A model generated the notes under the pieces. It was not told where the DNA came from. It did no database searches and saw only the letters and a list, made by a program, of their open reading frames with translations. A stretch of DNA of 64,000 bases from Oikopleura dioica (lineage: Eukaryota > Animalia > Chordata). The position numbers and the translations under genes were made by a program. Location of the stretch: NCBI GenBank assembly GCA_907165135.1, contig OU015568.1:15387208-15451207 (forward strand), read 5' to 3'. Shown here one piece after another: positions 9,077-52,895 of the stretch; the stretch's first letter is position 1, and every line of letters starts with the position of its first letter.

Positions 9077-11965
9077 TTATTGTTTTTGATATTTAATTAC
9101 TGCAGACTGTAACATCTTTAATAATGATTCTTCTGAATTCTCTTTCTTTTGGCCTTAAATTAAAAATAAATTTATAAAAATATAAATAAATATCACCTCG
9201 ACCTGGAGTAAGAGTAATCGAAAACGCTTGTTTCAGAAGATACCATTTTTCAGTATCCATATTAAAATTTTCATTCACCAAAGCTGTTATCTCGTTGTTT
9301 GGTCCGAAATCGACGAAATCATTGAAAGTGTTTTTGCAATAAACCATCACTTCGTAAGAAGCGTAGAATTCTCTGGTAAGAGGAATCCTGATCTGAGAGC
9401 CGGAATGGTCGATGAGAGTGTTTTGTAGAATGAATTCGGAGTTTTCGATTCGGTCCAGCACCATTTGGTGGAAAAATATTGATCTGTCGGGATTGAGGTA
9501 GGCGCCCGTGACGGTTAATGGACGGGAGAAGGCGAAGTTGTGGTGGAGGAAGACTAGAATTATGATTTGATGTATCAATAACTGAGTAGTATACAAATAA
9601 TATTCCGGAAAAATAGAATTATTAACCTTGTTTATAATCGAAGTCACCCTTTATTATTCCGAAATATTTGCGTTTTTTAATTATTTCCCATCCACTTGGA
9701 TTCAAATAAGTTTCAAATTTCATTCTTCTGAGAAGCAATTCAATTTCGTTTGTTTGAAATTCTTGCTCTACTTTTTTCGGGTTGAGATTGAAGCCAGCCA
9801 AACTGCGCGGATAAATTATCATCGTCAGAAGAGTGAAGATTTTTTCGAGAGTAAAACTGTTTCTCATTCTCCAATCATCAATTTTCAAATCATTTTGGAG
9901 TGCCCATCGCAAAAGAACAGAAACCGAAATGGGGACACATAAATGGTGATACGGCCTAATTCTTCGGCTTGAAGGCCGAAGGATTGATGCGTATAAGAAC
10001 ACTGATTCTTCGGCAAAAACCGAAGAATAAGTGATAAAAGATACACTGATTCTTCGGCTTAGGAAAATTAATTCACAGATTCCTGAGGAATCATTCCCTT
10101 GCCCCTTACCACGGGGCTCCGCCCCTTAGGTCCTTAAATGCCGGGGTCTAGTCTATGGTTACTTAGGGTTACCTTCGGTAACCCTAACTAACCCTAGCCT
10201 ATCCCCCTCGGGTAAGTTTGCTCTGTCATTTTGCCCAGTGCCCCCTAACCCTAACCTCAAATTATAGAATGTTCTTATTGCTAAAAATGAGTTTTTCTCT
10301 AGAAAATGTCTTTTTTTGCATAAGTTATGACTCACAGGTACAATTCTCAAAAGATTTTCGACAATGGATTCTAGAAAATTTGCCGAAGAATCACTGTCAA
10401 TTTTATCATAAATCCTTCGGTTCAAGGGAATTCCCAATATGCCGAAGAATCAGTGTGAATGAAAGCATCAATTCTTCGGTCTTGCCGAAGAATCAGCCCA
10501 TACCACGACATAAATTGCTTTCTTTTGGTTTAAAACATTCTTCGTCACATTTTCGAAATCGAAATTAATTTGTCTTGTTAGTTTGTGTTTAAGATTGGCC
10601 ATTGCTGAAGACTTCGTTAGATTCGGATCGTCCAGGCAAAAATCAGAAGCCGCGTTTTTTAAAGAAATGATCGTGGAGATTCTTTTGATTTGGTCGATTG
10701 ATGGAGAAAAACGTAACAGCCATTCACCATTACACGCCTAGAAAATATTATTTTCAAACGCGGCAATCAACACTTGCCTTCAGTTCTTCTTTGATTTTTT
10801 GCTTTTCTTCTTTTTCGATCGGTTTGAAGAGAAGACTCCAGGCTGTTTTCCAATCGCAAAGAATCAGAACATGAAGTGGTGTTCCATTTACCGGATCAAA
10901 AGATATTGACTCTCCAAAAAGTTGATTATTTCCCGTATAAGCAGCGGAACCAGCATCTAAGACGAAAAATCAAACATGATCAAATAATTTTCAAAGAACA
11001 CAAGCTCAAAACTTACATAAGAGTTCATCACTTGTATATTTGCTCCCTTTCCTCGCGTAGCCCATTCTGCGATAGCTCTCCCTTCCAGTCGTTTCATAAA
11101 TAGTTCCAAAATCAACCCATTTGCATTGTTCGTTTTTCAATAAAATATTTTCCGGCTTCTTATCGCAGTGCAGAAGTCCAACGCTCTCCAAATACCCATA
11201 TCCCCTTTCCACTTCAATCGCAATCCTTTTCCGTTCTTCCAAGCTCAAATCTTCGTCTTTCAACCTGCTTCTCAAGTCGCAGTCGCACTTTTCCATGATT
11301 GTTATCCATCCAAGGCAGTCCTGCCTCTCCTCGTCTTTGCTCCCATAAATTTCGATGTTGCAAAAGTTCCTGACCACGTTCGGATGAACTGGAATAACTG
11401 AAGCGTCGACTTTTTCCTGGTTTTCAGCGATTTCGTAGTCTTTAATTTTATAATAAAATCCTAATAAGATTTTATGATTACCCTTAGAAAGATAAATCTC
11501 AAAGTCTAACTCTTCATTTTTCTCCGAAAACAGTGCCGAGTCAAACGCCTGAACCCGAACAGCAACATCCAGTTCTTCGAATTTTTCTTCCAAAACAATC
11601 GCTTCTCCTCCAGAAGAAATCATTTTTTGTTTAAGGAACTCATCGATAATCCATTTTCCTGTTTCTTCTTTGAGTTCGGAGCGGTTTATTTTTCGCCCTT
11701 TCACTTCCGGAATTTTGTCGAGAATCATTTTTTGAAATGAAGTTATTGCCCATTCGTTGCCAAAAACTTTTCCTTTCCCATTTTCAATGGTAACCTCTTC
11801 CCAGCGAGCACACCAATAGTCATGAAACTCGAGTCTCTCAACGGACAAAATCAGTCTGTCCAAGTCATCTCTGCTAGTGGTTCTCTTCAATTTCTTTTTA
11901 AAATCTTCCAACCATTCCTCAACAGCTTCTCTTGTCAACTCTTTTGGATGCGTCGTAATTTGCAT
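9077..11965 (-). pseudogene. Paralogous kinase-papain fusion gene, interrupted by a MITE at the catalytic Cys codon
   Basis: Same four intron positions as the 49-51 kb copy (11481-11440, 11016-10957, GC-AG 10777-10738, and about 9625-9553). Motifs SSGGEAIV, VAVRV, HCDKKPENILL, VDFG, NQK-x-SNLCVPIS and HQMVLDRIENSEFILQN. A 1-bp deletion at 10523-10526 and a 563-bp insertion at 9945-10507 disrupt the frame. The last exon is uncertain. Confidence 0.75.
9945..10507. mobile_element. Non-autonomous TIR element (MITE) with an 8-bp target duplication
   Basis: ACATAAAT is repeated at 9937-9944 and 10508-10515. The imperfect 24-bp TIRs are GGTGATACGGCCTAATTCTTCGGC and GCCGAAGAATCAGCCCATACCACG, with subterminal CACTGATTCTTCGGC repeats. 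A GG terminus plus 8-bp TSD resembles Merlin elements (inference). Confidence 0.85.
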
Positions 11966-32200: not shown

Positions 32201-32640
32201 AAGAATGAAGAGTTGAAGTTTGAAATTCATCTCTGAAGGTAATTTTAAAGTTTTATTGAAGACTTATTTCTTATACTTCTTTTAGATTATAAAATGCACC
32301 GTTAATAACAGCCCTCTTACGTGATGAGAAATTTCGTCAACGTCGAGATATTCCAAACCAGTGGCGAGGCGAAACAGGATTGCCTTGGCTGGATCACAAC
32401 CATGGAAAAGTGCGACTGCGATCTTCGAAGCCGACTGAAGAAAGAAGATCTCAACTTGGAAGAAAGAAAGAAAATAGCGATTGGAATACATGAGGACGAA
32501 GATTATTTGAAGAGCGTTGGAATCAAACACATGGACATAAAACCGGAAAATATTTTTTTGAAGTCAAATGGATCGACTTTGGAACTTTTGGATGATGATG
32601 GACTCAAGAAGAAAGAGATAACGACAAATGGGCTACACTC
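32201..32640 (+). pseudogene. Third, truncated and degenerate copy of the same kinase family
   Basis: KNEELKFEIHL is followed by an intron at the family position, then QDCLGWITTMEKCDCDLRSRLKKEDLNLEERKKIA, very close to the 11-kb copy, and HMDIKPENIFL. KWIDFGT lies in a shifted frame, and a stop precedes RQMGYT. No protease part is visible. Confidence 0.8.
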
Positions 32641-41238: not shown

Positions 41239-41909
41239 ATGTTTTGGGGACCGAGAGAAGTCATTTATACTAATTTTGTAAGTTTGATAGCTTTATAACT
41301 TTGTTAATTCTCATTTAGGGGTTCACAGAAAAGTTCTTACTAGTAGGAACTATTTGCTGTGCTTTATATTTGTTCGAAATGTACCGAGAAGACAGAAAAA
41401 TGTTCGAAGATCGAGTAAAGTTGGATATTCAAGCAATATCTCGTCAAAGGATGTCTTATCCACATCGGATGTCAGAAGACATAACCGCTAGCATTAAAAC
41501 ACAGCATCAACTAAAGACGATGGAAAAAAAGCTCAACTCTATTTCGGCACCTCTTCGAAATGATCATGATGCGATTAATCAGAAAATAAGTGAAGTGCGA
41601 AATGTTGTACTAAATAATCATCATATGATTAATTTGATGGAACATGAGCATCATAAAACGAAAACACAATTAGAAACTATTGAAAGAAAGCTTCAATCTT
41701 TGTCTGATGCTACTAGAAACCAGGGTGAAACTGAGGAGTCCTCCTGCAAAATTTGCTTCGAGCCATTTGATACAGATCTTCATCATCTATCCTGCATCAA
41801 CAAATGCTACCATACATTTTGCATTTCTTGTCTGAGAACTATTGATCCAAAACAATGTCCTGTCTGCAGAAAACAATTCAAAAATTGTCACATTAAAAAG
41901 CTTTACTAA
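41239..41909 (+). CDS. Membrane-anchored coiled-coil protein with a C-terminal C3HC4 RING finger (putative E3 ligase)
   Basis: MFWGPREVIYTNF | GFTEKFLLVGTICCALYLF (TM) is followed by a heptad-rich region and CKICFEPFDTDLHHLSCINKCYHTFCISCLRTIDPKQCPVCRK. Confidence 0.85.
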
Positions 41910-42047: not shown

Positions 42048-43930
42048 ATGAAGCTTTTTGATTTTTCAATAATCGTTTGCGTTTTTGCAAATTCAAGACC
42101 GAATGATTTACCAAGCTCAACAATAAAATGTCAACCCAATGCGACAAGAGACTCATTCACTGCAGGAAAATTTCCTGAAAGCTTCAAGAAACAGATAAAA
42201 GATTTCGAAAATATAAGGATTCTTAAAATTGAATTTCGTAATGTTTTCTATTTTTGCTTATCTTGTGAAAGTGGTCTCTAGCAACTGCTGCGTATCAAAT
42301 CGAGGGCGCCTGGGACAAAGATGGCAAGGGCAAAAACATTTGGGATGTGTTCACTCAAACGCCTGGAAATGTGTGGAACAACGAAACGGGAAACGAGGCT
42401 TGTAAATCGTACCAAAATATGGAGCGCCATATTTCAAATTTGAAACAACTCGGCGCCAAAGAATACCGCTTTTCGATTTCTTGGGCTCGTTTGTGCCCAA
42501 CTGGCAAATGTGCTGACGCAAAAGATCATGAAAAACGAGGAATCGATCACTACCACAGCTTTCTCGATCTTCTTCATGCAGCTGGAATCGAGCCATTTGT
42601 GACGCTCTTCCACTGGGATCTTCCGCAAGCTCTTCAAGATGAATACAACGGTTGGGAAAGTGCGAAAATTGTGGATGACTTCGCAGATTATGTCCGCCTT
42701 GTTTTTCGAGAATACGGCGACAGGGTCAAGAATTGGATCACACTGAACGAAGCCGAGGTCATTTGCGACTTTGGATATGGCACTGGCGTTAATGCTCCTG
42801 GAACAAAGGGGTTGAAGTCGCAGTTTGATTGTCGACATCATACTGTTCTTGCTCATGCCAAGTAAAAAAAACTAATCAAAATTGCGATGTTTTTCCTTTA
42901 GGGCGTATCATATTTACGACAAAGAATTTCGAGCGCAGCAAAAAGGCAGTATCGGTATCACCATGAATTCAGATTGGTATGAACCGCTAAATAATTCGAA
43001 GGAAAATAAAGATGCTGCTCAACGATTCATCGATTTTCAGGCAAGCAAACAAAATTTGACTCTCATTAACTGTTGCTAGCTTGGTTTCTGGGCGGATCCA
43101 ATCTACCTGACCGGCGATTATCCCGAATCTATATTGAAACGATACAACGATTCGATTCTCCAGCGCTTTACTGATGAGCAAAAACAACAAAACAAAGGAT
43201 CCGCCGACTTCTTCGGACTCAACACATACACGACTCAACTGGTTACTGACGGAGACAAGGACGGAAGTAGGTTAAAATTGACGAGTTCGAAAATTAATAT
43301 TCTCTTGAGAAAATAAAGGAGTCGATTGGACCGGCCATACTTGTCCTCAGTGGCCTCAAGCTGGGTCCGAATGGCTTTTTTCCGTTCCATGGGGTTTCAG
43401 ACGGCTACTCAAGTACATCGATAACCGATACGACTCCACGGCTGTACCAATCTTTGTCACTGAAAATGGAATTTCATCAACTGGGAACGGCACCGATTCG
43501 AAGCCAGAACTCAATGATCAGTGGAGAATCGACCACTTTACTAGCTATATCGGTAAATAACTCGCATTATGTCGAGGCAGCTATATTCTTTCAGGACAAA
43601 TGAGGCGAGCAATCGAGGAAGACGGAGCTAACGTCCAAGTTTACACGGCCTGGTCTTTGATGGACAATTTTGAATGGTCAGATGGCTACAGGGATCGTTT
43701 CGGTCTGATCTGGACGGACTTTTCTAGCGAAAACAGAACGACTCTTTTCAAGCAATCTGCGCGGTTTTACTCTGATCTTATTCAGGTTTTTCTTTAAAAA
43801 TAATCCACTTAACTTATTTCAGACAAATAATCTGAAATGCGCGAAAGGAACAAATACCTGTAATTCAGCTGCTGTCAGTTCTTCTTATATCTCGACTTTT
43901 TTATTGATGATCTTCAATATCTTTTATTGA
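42048..43930 (+). CDS. Glycoside hydrolase family 1 beta-glucosidase (lactase-like), secreted, with a putative GPI-anchor signal
   Basis: Signal peptide [14 protein letters not shown]; motifs [43 protein letters not shown] (acid/base Glu), FVTENG (nucleophile Glu) and [14 protein letters not shown]; hydrophobic tail [22 protein letters not shown]; short introns. Confidence 0.95.
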
Positions 43931-48528: not shown

Positions 48529-49084
48529 GGGATCCCCCCCACCCCCGATTTCGTCAACTTTGACTTCGAACTACTTTTTTTAGGGCTGAGCTTTTTACCA
48601 GTATGAATGCTCATTTTGAAGCCCGTTTCTTAATGAACAAACTCTTGTATAGAAATTTATTTTCGTAAGGGGAAACATCTTGAAAAAACGGGCTGAAAAC
48701 ATTGATACTCGCGAAAAACACCATTTTGGGCCATTTTCAAAATCGAACTAGTTTTTTCTGCTCTTAGATAGAGCCCTAAATCAATAAAAACTGTCTTCCT
48801 CCATCCCTGATCTACAATCTCTTGTACAGGCATGTGATTCCGTCAAGGATTGTAGAATTTTTGATTTTTACTGATTGATTTACTGGTTAGATATTTTATT
48901 AAATCAATTTTTTCTAAGTAAAATTTTTCGTTAAAATAAGCCATTTTCAAAGCTGTGTCACGGCTTACCACGTGACGGACTCCCTTCGACATAATATATG
49001 AAAATGATCGCCATACAACGGAGATTCCAAAAATATATCACATAAAAGCTCTCGATGATATTATTTAAATCGGGAGGGTATCCC
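48529..49084. mobile_element. TTAA-flanked MITE (Kolobok-like termini)
   Basis: TTAA|GGGATCCCCCCC at the left end and GGGAGGGTATCCC|TTAA at the right end. Confidence 0.65.
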
Positions 49085-49422
49085 TTAAGGAAGTACAGTG
49101 GTGTGTTCAGTTGCTTCACCCCTGACCCGCACTTTTTCTATTGTAGCAAAAGTGAGTGCTGCGTTTCTGCACCTTTTACCCGCTGTCTAGGGGTGCAGCA
49201 ACTCCACACACCACTGTAGGACTAGGATTTGACAATGATGGAATATTAAGAGTTAGGGTGATCTATCTACTGTTCTTTCACTTACATAAAACAAATAATC
49301 AGAGCTTTTTCCTTTTCGGTCAATATTTTGCATCACGAATTCTTTTTCAACGACCAAATAAATTTAATAAATTCTTTAATTCTTTGATTATGGATGATAA
49401 TTTATGAATATAAATGCACATT

Positions 49423-51693
49423 TTAGTCAAGAGCATCTTCGGACAGAGCTAAAGAGATTTCTATAGAAAAGGCTTCGGGGAAAAGATACCATCTTCCAAT
49501 TTTCATGTTTCCGAATTCTTCGTTGACAATTTCCATTGAATATCCATCACCAACAAGAACCGCGGAGCCGTTTTCTTCGAGATTCTCGAAAAATGCTCCG
49601 CCGTAGATGTAATAAGGGTCGGAGACGGGAATTTTGACAACGGGAGCTTCTAGGGGCAGCTCTGATTGAAGAGAAAATTGAGTGTTTTGGAGAATGAAGT
49701 TTCCAGACTCAATGCGGTCGATTGTCATTTGATGGAAAAAGGGTTCCGACTCTTCATCGAATAAGTAGACCCCGGTGACTGTGAGCGGACGGGAGAAAGT
49801 AAACAACGGATGAAGAATAACTATGAGAGATTTTATGAATAAATGATATTTGAGATTATTACCTTTTCTGTAAATGCAGCTCGAGACAATTGGACGTTTT
49901 TCTCGTTCTTTCCCAAGACGTCTGATAATTTCCCAGCCGCTTTCCATTAAATATGTTTGATGACACAGTCGCTGCAGAAGAACTTCGACTTGATTCGTTT
50001 GTTTTTCTTGTTCATCCTTTGTAGGATTCAAATTCAATCCAGACATACTTCTAGGATAAACGATCATCGTCAATGTCGAGAGAATATTTTCGAAAGAGTA
50101 CTGTCTGTAAAACCAATCATCAAAATCAAGGTCTTTCTTGATCGCGTGCCGAAGAAGCGTCGTCACAGATATCGGAACGCAAAGATCACTGCTTTTTTGG
50201 TCAAGAATATTTTTGGTCAAATTTTCCATGTTTAAATTGACGCATTTTGTTATGTTTTCTTTAAGACTTGACATGTTGCAGGATTGGGTCAGATTCGGAT
50301 CGTCTAAGCAAAATGAGGAGTCAGCTTCGTCCAGACAGATGATTTTTGTAATTTCATCAAGAATTAAAAGATTTTTGCTCTCGTGAATGAGATCAGCATT
50401 ACAGCGCTGAAATTTGAAAAAAATAATATCGTTTTTTTTTTCTTACTTTGACAATTTCGTCAATCTTTTTTCTTTCTTCCTCCAAAATTGGCTTATAAAG
50501 AAGCGTCCAAGAAGTTCTCCAATTACAAAACAGAAAATACCAAATATTGTTTGTTCTATAACCATTTCCGTTCGCCAGCTGTAATTGAAAAGTGAATGCA
50601 GGCGAGCCAGCGACTAAATAGTGCTCATTTTAGAGTTTTAAAAAATCACTTACAAAGTATGCTATTTGCATATTTGGACCCTCTTCTGGTGTAGCCCATT
50701 TGTCTGTAGCCTTCTATTCCTGATGTTTCGTTGACCAGGCCAAAATCAATGATTTTTGGGATTCCATCGAGAAGCATAACGTTTGCCATTTTTAAATCTA
50801 AGTGAGTTATTCCGACATCCAACAAATAATTAAATCCCTTTAGAAGGCCCCATCCAATTTTTTTTCTTTGCTCAAGATCAAGTTGATCTTCTTTCAGCAG
50901 GAATCTCAAATCTGTATCTGCCTTTTCCATGATTGTTATCCACCCAGTGCATTCCTCCATTTTTGAGTCCTTTTTATTGAATAACTCGATATTTGCAAAA
51001 TGTTTGATAACGTTTTTATGAAATGGCATCTGATTTTGGTTTTCTGTTTCTTCTTTATTTTCCGCGTGTTCGAAATCTAAGACTGAATAGAAGCCCAAAA
51101 ATCAAAAAGAACAAACCTTCGGCAATGTTTATTTTCCACATAATTGAGTCCAAACCCAAATTATCCGTAAACAGAAAAGGGTCAAAAACTTGAACCCGAA
51201 CCGCAGTTTCTAAACATCCGATCTTATCTCCAAAAACAATCGCCTCTCCTCCCATTGAAATCAATTTAGTTTTCAAAGAACTTCTAAGTTCCCACTCACC
51301 AGTTTCTTCTTTAATATCCCATCGACTGATAAATTTGTTTTTGAGAGACGTATCATTTTCCAAAATCATTTTTTGAGCTGCAGTTATTTTAAAACTTTCT
51401 ATTTTCGTTCTATCTCGGTGATAGATATATCCTCGATCTTCCTCAAAAAGACAAAATTCCCAATGATACGCACTGTTAAATTTCTCGAAGACCATTTTTT
51501 CGATTGTCGAAATCAATCGACACTTCTCCGTCAGCGTCGATGTTCTCTTTAATTGCGGCAAGAAAGAACCAAGCCATGTCTCAATCTCTTTTTTTTCAAG
51601 GTTTTCTTCTTTCAAATCGGCGGAATTGTCGATAAAAAGCCATTTTAAAAGCCAGACGCAAAAGAACGCCGAAAAAAAAATTTCCTCGAGCAT
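49423..51693 (-). CDS. Atypical protein kinase-like domain fused to a C-terminal papain-like (clan CA) cysteine protease domain; intact 5-exon gene, about 702 aa
   Basis: Exons 51693-51117, 51076-50654, 50613-50447, 50406-49863 and 49820-49423 are joined by GT-AG introns of 40, 40, 40 and 42 bp into one open 2109-nt frame. Kinase motifs: SMGGEAIV, TAVRV, HLDLKMANVML, IIDFG. Protease motifs: DQKSSDLCVPIS (Q to C+6) and FHQMTIDRIESGNFILQN (H to N+16). The start codon is uncertain. Confidence 0.85.
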
Positions 51694-51949
51694 TGCTACT
51701 CTATTTCTTCAAATTAAGGAGCTCCTTATTTTTGCAGATGTTATACACGAAAAACTAGTAGCCGTTGCTTAGCATTCCCTTTTTCTTCGAAAAATGCTTA
51801 TTTCTATGGTCCTATTTGTTTTGTGATATTTGCAAGTGTTATAAAAAATCGATAGGAGTCAAACGAAAGGGGGTGTGTTACAGTTATTAACCATAGTTTG
51901 AATATTTCTTACCGCTTTAACTAGCTTAAACGTTTCTAAATAGTTTCTT

Positions 51950-52090
51950 CATGCAAGCTTCATGTCCGGAATAAGGTCATGAATGATTGGGCTGGCTACA
52001 GATGTACATGAAGATGCTAGAAATTTACAAAAGTTTCGTTCAATAAAACGGCTCAATTGATTGACAATATCTTTAAATTTTTCCCGAAAT
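51950..52090 (+). pseudogene. Remnant of the last exon and 3' UTR of a nuclease paralog
   Basis: GGAATAAGGTCATGAATGATTGGGCTGGCTACAGA...GCTAG...CAATAAAACGGCTCAA resembles 48405-48500. Confidence 0.5.
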
Positions 52091-52234
52091 ATTTCTTACA
52101 GATTAATGGTAACATGAAAATAATATTCAGGTTGTCAATAAGGAGTTCTACTGAACTACCACTCAGACAAAACAAATAATCAGAGCTCGGTCCTCTTACA
52201 GATCAATCATTTCAGAGCCTTTTAACTAGAGATC

Positions 52235-52895
52235 AGTACTGAGAGAGGCAATTTTCTGTCAGTTAGATTTTCTGGCAGTTAGACTTTCTGGCAAAGGCGA
52301 AGAGAGTTATCACTAAAATACTATTTTTGGCGAAAATGGTACTAGAAATTAGGAACGTGCAGCAACAACAAAATTTTAGTAAAAAGCACTGTTCTTAGTG
52401 ATAACTCTCTTCAGAGTATTCATACAACCTTCATTTTTTACCCTGCAGGAGAACTGACTATAAGAAACAATTTCCGGCGTCAAACATTAGTCTATCACTT
52501 CTAGAACGAAAACGGCCGGTGACAACGTATTTTCCGGTAACCAGCCGGTAAACCGGTCAATCCTACGAGTTATCAGGAGTTAGACCCATCGTTCGACTCG
52601 TCTTGACGAGCTTAAGAAAACTGCACTTGCAGTTTTTTTACGATTTCCGGCCCCTCAAATAGTTTTTTGAAATCATCCTCAGAAGAATCAGAAGATGAAT
52701 TCCGATCTTTTCTTCTCTCCGTTTTTTACCTTCCAGAATCAATAACTGTATATTCAAAATTAAAAGAGGCGATTTTCTGGAAATTAGATTTTCTGTCATA
52801 TTTGATTTTCTGGCAGTGCCAGAAAATCGCCTTTGCCAGAAAGTCTAACTGCCAGAAAATCTAACTGCCAGAAAATCGCCTCTCTCATCAGTACT
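52235..52895. mobile_element. TIR element with about 65-bp TIRs built from TTTTCTGGCAGTTAG repeats
   Basis: AGTACTGAGAGAGGCAATTTTCTGTCAGTTAG... and ...CTAACTGCCAGAAAATCGCCTCTCTCATCAGTACT. A TA target duplication is plausible. Confidence 0.8.

Follow-up and report, generated by a model that had tools for sequence, protein, structure and literature searches.

A large Oikopleura dioica gene family joining a kinase-like domain to a predicted papain-fold domain

A 64,000-nucleotide (nt) stretch of the Oikopleura dioica genome, referred to here as the window (C1:15387208-15451207), carries on its minus strand a five-exon gene predicted to encode a 704-residue protein, in which a kinase-like domain is followed by a C-terminal domain (C-domain) of predicted papain fold. 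As read from the spliced frame, the two domains are joined within one gene. Judged from its structural model, the C-domain is best described as a new family within clan CA, the papain-fold enzymes. The explanation that fits best as a whole, on which our confidence is evenly balanced, is that the gene belongs to an Oikopleura-restricted family of kinase-like plus clan CA peptidase-like proteins in which the kinase part would regulate or scaffold the enzyme. Coordinates without a chromosome prefix are window positions, residue numbers refer to the 704-residue model unless stated otherwise, and the genome searched is the 64.3-Mb assembly of 19 contigs. Features are collected in Table 1.

The DNA of the window is animal, and its introns are very short. 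An earlier interpretation made from its letters only (the sequence-only reading) had proposed an intact five-exon open reading frame (ORF) uniting the kinase-like and C-terminal domains, and this was borne out once one splice acceptor was corrected. The five exons form a single 2115-nt frame that carries every family motif, and all four introns are of the GT..AG type, with lengths of 34, 40, 40 and 42 nt. The exon-3 acceptor that closes the frame is TATTTAG/TC at 50614/50613; it gives the stretch FAGSPAF, in agreement with the family consensus fagtPGF. A more obvious acceptor at 50579 (...ACAG) was rejected because the frame breaks there. Annotated full-length O. dioica proteins, 692-707 aa long, are 47-54% identical to the gene model in an end-to-end alignment over its residues 34-695. 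Matches to 30 paralogous loci are interrupted at shared residue positions, 192/195, ~333/337, 391/392 and 572/573, which are the exon borders. Intron 1 (51116-51083; GTTTGT...ATTCAG) is short even for this genome, and its position agrees with a paralog exon border.

The last ~250 residues match nothing in Pfam (E<=1) and no sequence in the PDB, either as a single protein or as a 79-sequence profile. A HMMER search of 1.84 billion representative proteins returned 123 matches (E <= 0.001) that are 24-73% identical where they align; each one that was traced comes either from O. dioica or from a short marine metagenome contig, none lying beyond the family. A 79-row alignment was built from the HMMER matches and the loci of the genome itself. 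The C-domain was modelled with AlphaFold as the 327-aa translation of 49426-50406 (minus strand), in which the in-frame 42-nt intron 4 is read as a 14-residue loop, and model residues are numbered on this translation. The model has a predicted template modelling score (pTM) of 0.74, and 176 residues have a predicted local distance difference test score (pLDDT) >90. By DSSP, the Cys (model residue 76) begins helix 76-92, the His (225) lies on strand 223-233 of a hairpin, and the Asn (241) follows the partner strand.

A Foldseek search of the PDB with this model returned nothing significant, and the fold was revealed by an exhaustive structural aligner alone. When the model was aligned to 48,161 PDB representative chains, 50 of the top 50 were clan CA enzymes. 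The matches include xylellain (Z 8.5; 161 residues aligned at 3.6 Å), Der p 1 (Z 8.2), cathepsin B (Z 7.9-8.0), the C39 domains of PCAT1 and ComA (Z 7.1-7.6), IdeS and staphopain (Z 6.6-6.9), and UfSP, ATG4 and ZUFSP (Z 5.4-6.2). Phytochelatin synthase and pseudomurein endoisopeptidase are also found among them. By the aligner's own calibration a Z of 7-8 is common for unmatched models, so what carries the fold argument is that the list is uniform and that the matches span the whole domain (model residues 67-320). The ESM Atlas neighbours of the C-domain are C39, C10 and C1 clusters. Taken as a model-based assignment, the papain fold of the C-domain is well supported, and so is the domain architecture of the protein.

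The same alignments place the putative catalytic residues. Gln19 of papain, Gln23 of cathepsin B and Gln28 of Der p 1 are oxyanion-hole glutamines, and in each enzyme the catalytic Cys lies six residues further on. Alignments to papain (residues 19-212), ervatamin C (19-208), cathepsin L (19-220) and cathepsin B (23-255) start at model residue 70, which is Gln461, as do those to the C39 chains of PCAT1 (15-144) and ComA (11-141). Der p 1 (27-222) starts at model residue 69, so that its Gln28 falls on residue 70. Since the alignments start on the oxyanion Gln, the model sets Gln461 and Cys467 at the places of papain Gln19 and Cys25. The spacings named in the sequence-only reading, +6 from Gln461 to Cys467 and +16 from His602 to Asn618, proved exact, as did its codon positions for Cys467 and His602. 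Among the paralog sequences, Gln461 is retained in 44 of 46, Cys467 in 47 of 48, His602 in 39 of 40 and Asn618 in 37 of 42. The set is thus 88-98% conserved against a mean identity of ~40%, which argues that Gln/Cys/His/Asn is not a chance pattern. Other conserved motifs of the C-domain are YPRS.aGLNLNP, GW, RPLTVTG and WYL.P.AYS. In a comparison by domain, conservation is highest in the helical lobe of the protease part (mean pairwise identity 0.67). P0064, which at 31% identity is the most diverged of the long metagenomic relatives, still has the kinase fused to the protease and retains the Gln, Cys and His. Pairwise Nei-Gojobori ratios of nonsynonymous to synonymous substitution (dN/dS) on the exon bearing the Gln and Cys are 0.2-0.45 for pairs with dS 0.27-0.86, the comparisons that involve the window gene all being saturated (dS >1.2). 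These ratios indicate purifying selection, with no sign of diversifying selection among the pairs tested.

The sequence-only reading had assigned the domain to C1A, the papain family, and here it was not upheld: the domain does not belong to family C1. Pfam family C1 (PF00112) does not match the C-domain at E<=1; a genome-wide scan with the same profile and threshold finds ordinary cathepsins only, with none of the family loci among them; and when the family profile is compared by hhalign with the cathepsins of this genome, the probability is ~0. Fold likeness to C39 (Z 7.1-7.6) is nearly as good as that to C1 (7.8-8.5), and the Gln-to-Cys and His-to-Asn spacing is common to C39 and several other clan CA families and therefore does not identify C1. 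There is no Pfam match to an I29 prodomain in the pieces before the C-domain, where a kinase domain stands instead (no signal-peptide prediction was made). The likeness to C39 is one of fold alone, with no Pfam match at E<=1 (PF03412/PF13529), and the deubiquitinase (DUB) and ubiquitin-like (UBL) protease families searched in Pfam (UCH, USP, OTU, Josephin, UfSP, ZUFSP) also gave no match.

A profile match, the catalytic loop and the DFG motif link the kinase-like part to the eukaryotic protein kinase superfamily. The piece encoded by exon 2 matches Pfam Pkinase (PF00069) at 49.3 bits (cut-off 31.7; E 5.6e-13), and the closest solved relative by sequence in the PDB is TTK/Mps1 (E 6e-9). The family consensus retains GI.H.D.K..N and DFG; the Gly loop reads S.GGEA; and Arg takes the place of the beta3 Lys (AvR) in at least 90% of family members, lying on strand beta3 in the model of the paralog P0137. 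Both the beta3 Lys (VAIK) and the GxGxxG loop of catalytically competent kinases are absent. These motifs and the consensus agree with the kinase described from sequence, with catalytic-loop Asp and Asn, DFG, Arg at beta3 and a degenerate Gly loop. P0137, a full-length paralog 54% identical to the window gene, was modelled with a 56-row alignment (707 aa; mean pLDDT 82; pTM 0.84), and the high pTM suggests that the three parts of the protein pack as one integrated body. Its kinase part finds kinases such as IRE1, CDPK1 and DAPK by Foldseek (E ~1e-7 to 1e-6) and BRAF, ULK4, PINK1, Mps1 and RNase L by the exhaustive aligner (Z 10-11). The C-lobe had been called short, a description that the P0137 alignments do not bear out: they cover whole kinase domains (e.g., BRAF 449-720) and extend to ~residue 420, which leaves no clear sign of a short C-lobe.

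The region ahead of the kinase is, beyond a hydrophobic start, a conserved domain with the motifs KCRL..VER and QK.iL. A Pfam search with this domain found no match and an Atlas feature search stayed at chance level. The start itself is a ~20-residue stretch (residues 5-21 hydrophobic; window 51693-51625 encodes residues 1-23) after an acidic MLE(E) beginning. It is common to the gene and its closest annotated relatives P0137, P0136 and P0139, and absent from the in-window paralog and from other subfamilies; in the P0137 model it forms a first helix of low pLDDT. From its composition the hydrophobic start may be a membrane anchor, which makes a cytosolic location no more than plausible.

The family is large. 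C-domain matches are found at 129 or more places in the genome, corresponding to roughly 100 loci or more on C1, C2, C4 and C5, often clustered, and most of the 30 best loci have the N-terminal region, kinase and C-domain in the same order. Named public relatives are all labelled O. dioica, the remainder being unnamed marine metagenome fragments; among the sequences searched, and metagenome fragments aside, the family was seen only in O. dioica. Public records call the family proteins either 'unnamed protein product [Oikopleura dioica]' or 'Protein kinase domain-containing protein'; none annotates the C-domain. The sequence-only reading knew of no kinase-C1 fusion family in animals; a full-text literature search, itself of incomplete coverage, turned up neither the family nor any fusion of a kinase with a papain-fold domain. 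One public O. dioica model, P0159 (568 aa), has a fucosyltransferase domain (PF00852) beside the kinase, and probably represents two adjacent genes merged by the gene predictor.

Two further copies lie in the window. An intact, a transposon-hit and a truncated copy within 42 kb had been reported, and all three are there; the copy at 32.3 kb is just an 80-aa kinase fragment, with a Pkinase score of 24.2 bits, below cut-off. In the diverged paralog at 9-12 kb the codons for all four catalytic residues are present, as had been claimed, but a miniature inverted-repeat transposable element (MITE) splits the Gln from the Cys, and its flanks are read in different frames. No GT/AG pair tried by eye as splice sites to excise the MITE restores the frame, and by its sequence this copy probably is broken. 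The MITE has terminal inverted repeats (core TGCCGAAGAATCAG) and internal palindromes, and at least 16 near-full-length copies occur elsewhere in the genome at 83-90% identity. A central piece of ~170 bp is repeated many more times, and a possible ATTTATGT duplication flanks the element. Two unrelated neighbours on the plus strand are an exon of glycosyl hydrolase family 1 at 42347-42865 (E 2.6e-57) and, at 41370-41909, an ORF with a weak RING-finger match that does not reach the Pfam cut-off.

Table 1. Positions of the gene, its domains and motifs, and related features
Feature	Position	Strand	Detail	Basis
Whole gene	49423-51693	minus	704 aa + stop	spliced frame, collinear with annotated O. 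dioica paralogs
Exon 1	51693-51117	minus		spliced frame
Exon 2	51082-50654	minus		spliced frame
Exon 3	50613-50447	minus		spliced frame
Exon 4	50406-49863	minus		spliced frame
Exon 5	49820-49423	minus		spliced frame
N-terminal region	51259-51693	minus	residues 1-145; fold unassigned	family consensus
Kinase-like domain	50447-51258	minus	~residues 146-391, probably to ~418	Pfam Pkinase, paralog model
Gly loop SMGGEA	51258-51241	minus		pattern S-x-G-x-x-A
Arg166	51198-51196	minus	in AVR	beta3 Lys position
HLDLKMAN	50804-50781	minus	H286-L-D288..K290..N293	catalytic loop
DFG	50747-50739	minus	D305-F-G307	Mg-binding motif
Linker/helical segment	50203-50406	minus	residues 392-459; low pLDDT in model	family consensus motif fCLDDpNLTKS
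Papain-fold (clan CA) cysteine-peptidase-like domain (predicted)	49423-50202	minus	residues 460-704	AlphaFold model, structural matches
Gln461	50199-50197	minus	putative oxyanion Gln	
Cys467	50181-50179	minus	putative nucleophile	
Intron 4	49862-49821	minus	42 nt; interrupts C-domain	GT..AG
His602	49734-49732	minus	putative base	
Asn618	49686-49684	minus	conserved Asn	
Diverged paralog	9207-11965	minus	38-58% identical by piece; probably broken	tblastn
MITE	9950-10515		566 bp; between Gln and Cys codons of 9207-11965 paralog	sequence, inverted repeats
Truncated copy	32321-32560	plus	80-aa kinase fragment = residues 217-296; 46% identical	tblastn
UBA-like match	C1:7141428-7141505	same as family C-domain	MGFEEE motif; 25.7-25.9 bits	weak Pfam match
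UBA-like match	C5:4552582-4552656	same as family C-domain	MGFEEE motif; 25.7-25.9 bits	weak Pfam match

In the favoured explanation, the C-domain would be a working intracellular cysteine peptidase or isopeptidase. On the model, Cys467 at the N-terminus of a helix would act as nucleophile and His602 as base, and Gln461 would form the oxyanion hole. The kinase-like module would chiefly be a nucleotide-binding unit that regulates or scaffolds the C-domain enzyme, by analogy with IRE1 and RNase L, in which a kinase or pseudokinase gates a C-terminal effector enzyme. As to biological role, the turnover of copies makes defence or conflict a reasonable guess. Several points weigh against this explanation: i) the best Z for the C-domain, 8.5, is middling by the aligner's calibration; ii) the loop bearing Gln461 has pLDDT <50 in both models; iii) Asn618 is replaced in P0064; iv) catalysis is deduced from fold and residues, and regulation of the protease part by the kinase part from analogy; v) Arg at beta3 is no proof of lost phosphotransfer; and vi) among the RNA reads listed from four runs known only by a shared species label, none of at least 95% identity fell on 49000-52300, the 3.3 kb covered.

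The last point bears on whether the window copy is a silent or decaying pseudogene, or whether the five pieces are not one transcript at all. The matches listed were partial, at 88-95% identity over conserved motif cores (49888-50220; three oligo-dT runs), and the splicing is taken from sequence logic and paralog collinearity. One read has an overhang in frame as the family motif KFTFDKILTI, which indicates that paralogs are transcribed and that at least those reads stem from them and not from the window copy. The neighbouring copies are broken, and intron 1 is only 34 nt. Yet the frame stays open over all 2115 nt, none of the family motifs is missing, the splice sites are canonical, and the exon borders are common to the paralogs. 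The runs lacked reads of at least 95% identity across the whole 3.3 kb, for which a diverged O. dioica lineage may be one reason. Decay of this copy is the least probable of the readings weighed here. It is slightly easier to imagine, though still improbable, that the papain-fold domain is no protease at all but an enzyme of transglutaminase, amidase or acyltransferase type, or a silent binding module on an active kinase. The clan CA fold includes non-protease enzymes, phytochelatin synthase and pseudomurein endoisopeptidase being among the matches, and the C-domain has no sequence similarity to characterised peptidase families. Against this stand the near-invariant oxyanion Gln at -6, Cys and His, a classic peptidase arrangement, and the best fold neighbours, which are true peptidases.

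Two other readings, both unlikely in our judgement, keep the domain as an enzyme and differ on its setting. The C-domain could specifically be a deubiquitinase or UBL isopeptidase, placing the family in the ubiquitin system. Where signalling proteins contain an intracellular clan CA domain, it is often an isopeptidase; UfSP, ZUFSP and ATG4 are among the fold neighbours; and of 11 UBA (PF00627) matches in the genome, two come immediately after a family C-domain, on its 3' side and its strand, both with the motif MGFEEE and both behind an apparent extra short intron after the protease-like domain. Read from sequence, these UBA-like tails are hints of a ubiquitin link for a minority of copies, but the matches are weak, affect two of ~100 copies and spare the window gene, and the fold agrees more closely with C1 and C39 peptidases than with any of the DUB families. 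A predicted complex of the C-domain with the genome's own ubiquitin scored 0.01, which counts neither for nor against binding. The second setting, given a similarly low weight, is an immune family of cytosolic sensor-effectors with birth-and-death evolution, in which the kinase-like or N-terminal part would sense a pathogen cue and release the protease. It draws on the clustered loci, roughly 100 or more on several chromosomes, on the lineage restriction and on the state of the three window copies, a pattern that fits the birth-and-death evolution proposed in the sequence-only reading. Against it, no diversifying selection was seen, dN/dS being 0.2-0.45 in the pairs tested; by mean pairwise identity, variability is no greater in the N-terminal domain (0.55) than in the kinase part (0.59); and large lineage-specific families in a fast-evolving genome need not be immune. 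The fuller proposal, that the protein is a single-chain switch in which a nucleotide-binding kinase fold gates the protease through dimerisation or a ligand, with ~100 copies forming an intracellular defence or surveillance repertoire, is more doubtful than either of these two settings.

The regulated-peptidase explanation favoured here brings together two familiar domain types for which no described family uniting them in one chain was found. The protease part has diverged beyond the reach of sequence methods and would be a new family of clan CA. That a family of about a hundred copies, restricted to one lineage, is under purifying selection in one of the most compact animal genomes implies a real function. 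Since database labels name the kinase domain only, the protease half is invisible to annotation-based studies.

The closest known systems share parts of this design. Peptidases of family C1 (papain, cathepsins B and L, Der p 1, xylellain) are the best fold neighbours (Z 7.8-8.5; 150-165 residues aligned), with the same two-lobe layout and the same order and spacing of Gln-x5-Cys and His-x15-Asn. They differ in showing no sequence similarity (~8-14% identity within structural alignments), and the Oikopleura C-domain has neither the CGSCW motif nor an I29 match and is fused behind a kinase, whereas C1 enzymes are normally secreted or lysosomal zymogens. The C39 domains of bacterial ATP-binding cassette (ABC) exporters (PCAT1, ComA, LahT) align at Z 7.1-7.6 and a root mean square deviation of 3.2-3.6 Å. 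Their Gln/Cys...His/Asp spacing is the same as in the Oikopleura C-domain, and they too are protease domains inside a larger nucleotide-binding machine; however, they are bacterial, ~130-150 aa long and without the extra helices and strands of the Oikopleura domain, and their partner is an ABC transporter, not a kinase. KSR-type pseudokinases carry Arg instead of the beta3 Lys of VAIK and retain the catalytic loop and DFG, but are an unrelated family with no protease domain. In IRE1 and RNase L the effector is a KEN-domain ribonuclease and the kinase fold is the sole relationship, regulation in the Oikopleura family being presumed; both are among the kinase fold neighbours, and in both a nucleotide-binding kinase-fold domain is followed by an effector enzyme in one chain. 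If the kinase-like part gates the protease, the Oikopleura family would be a new instance of this IRE1/RNase L design, one whose output is proteolysis.

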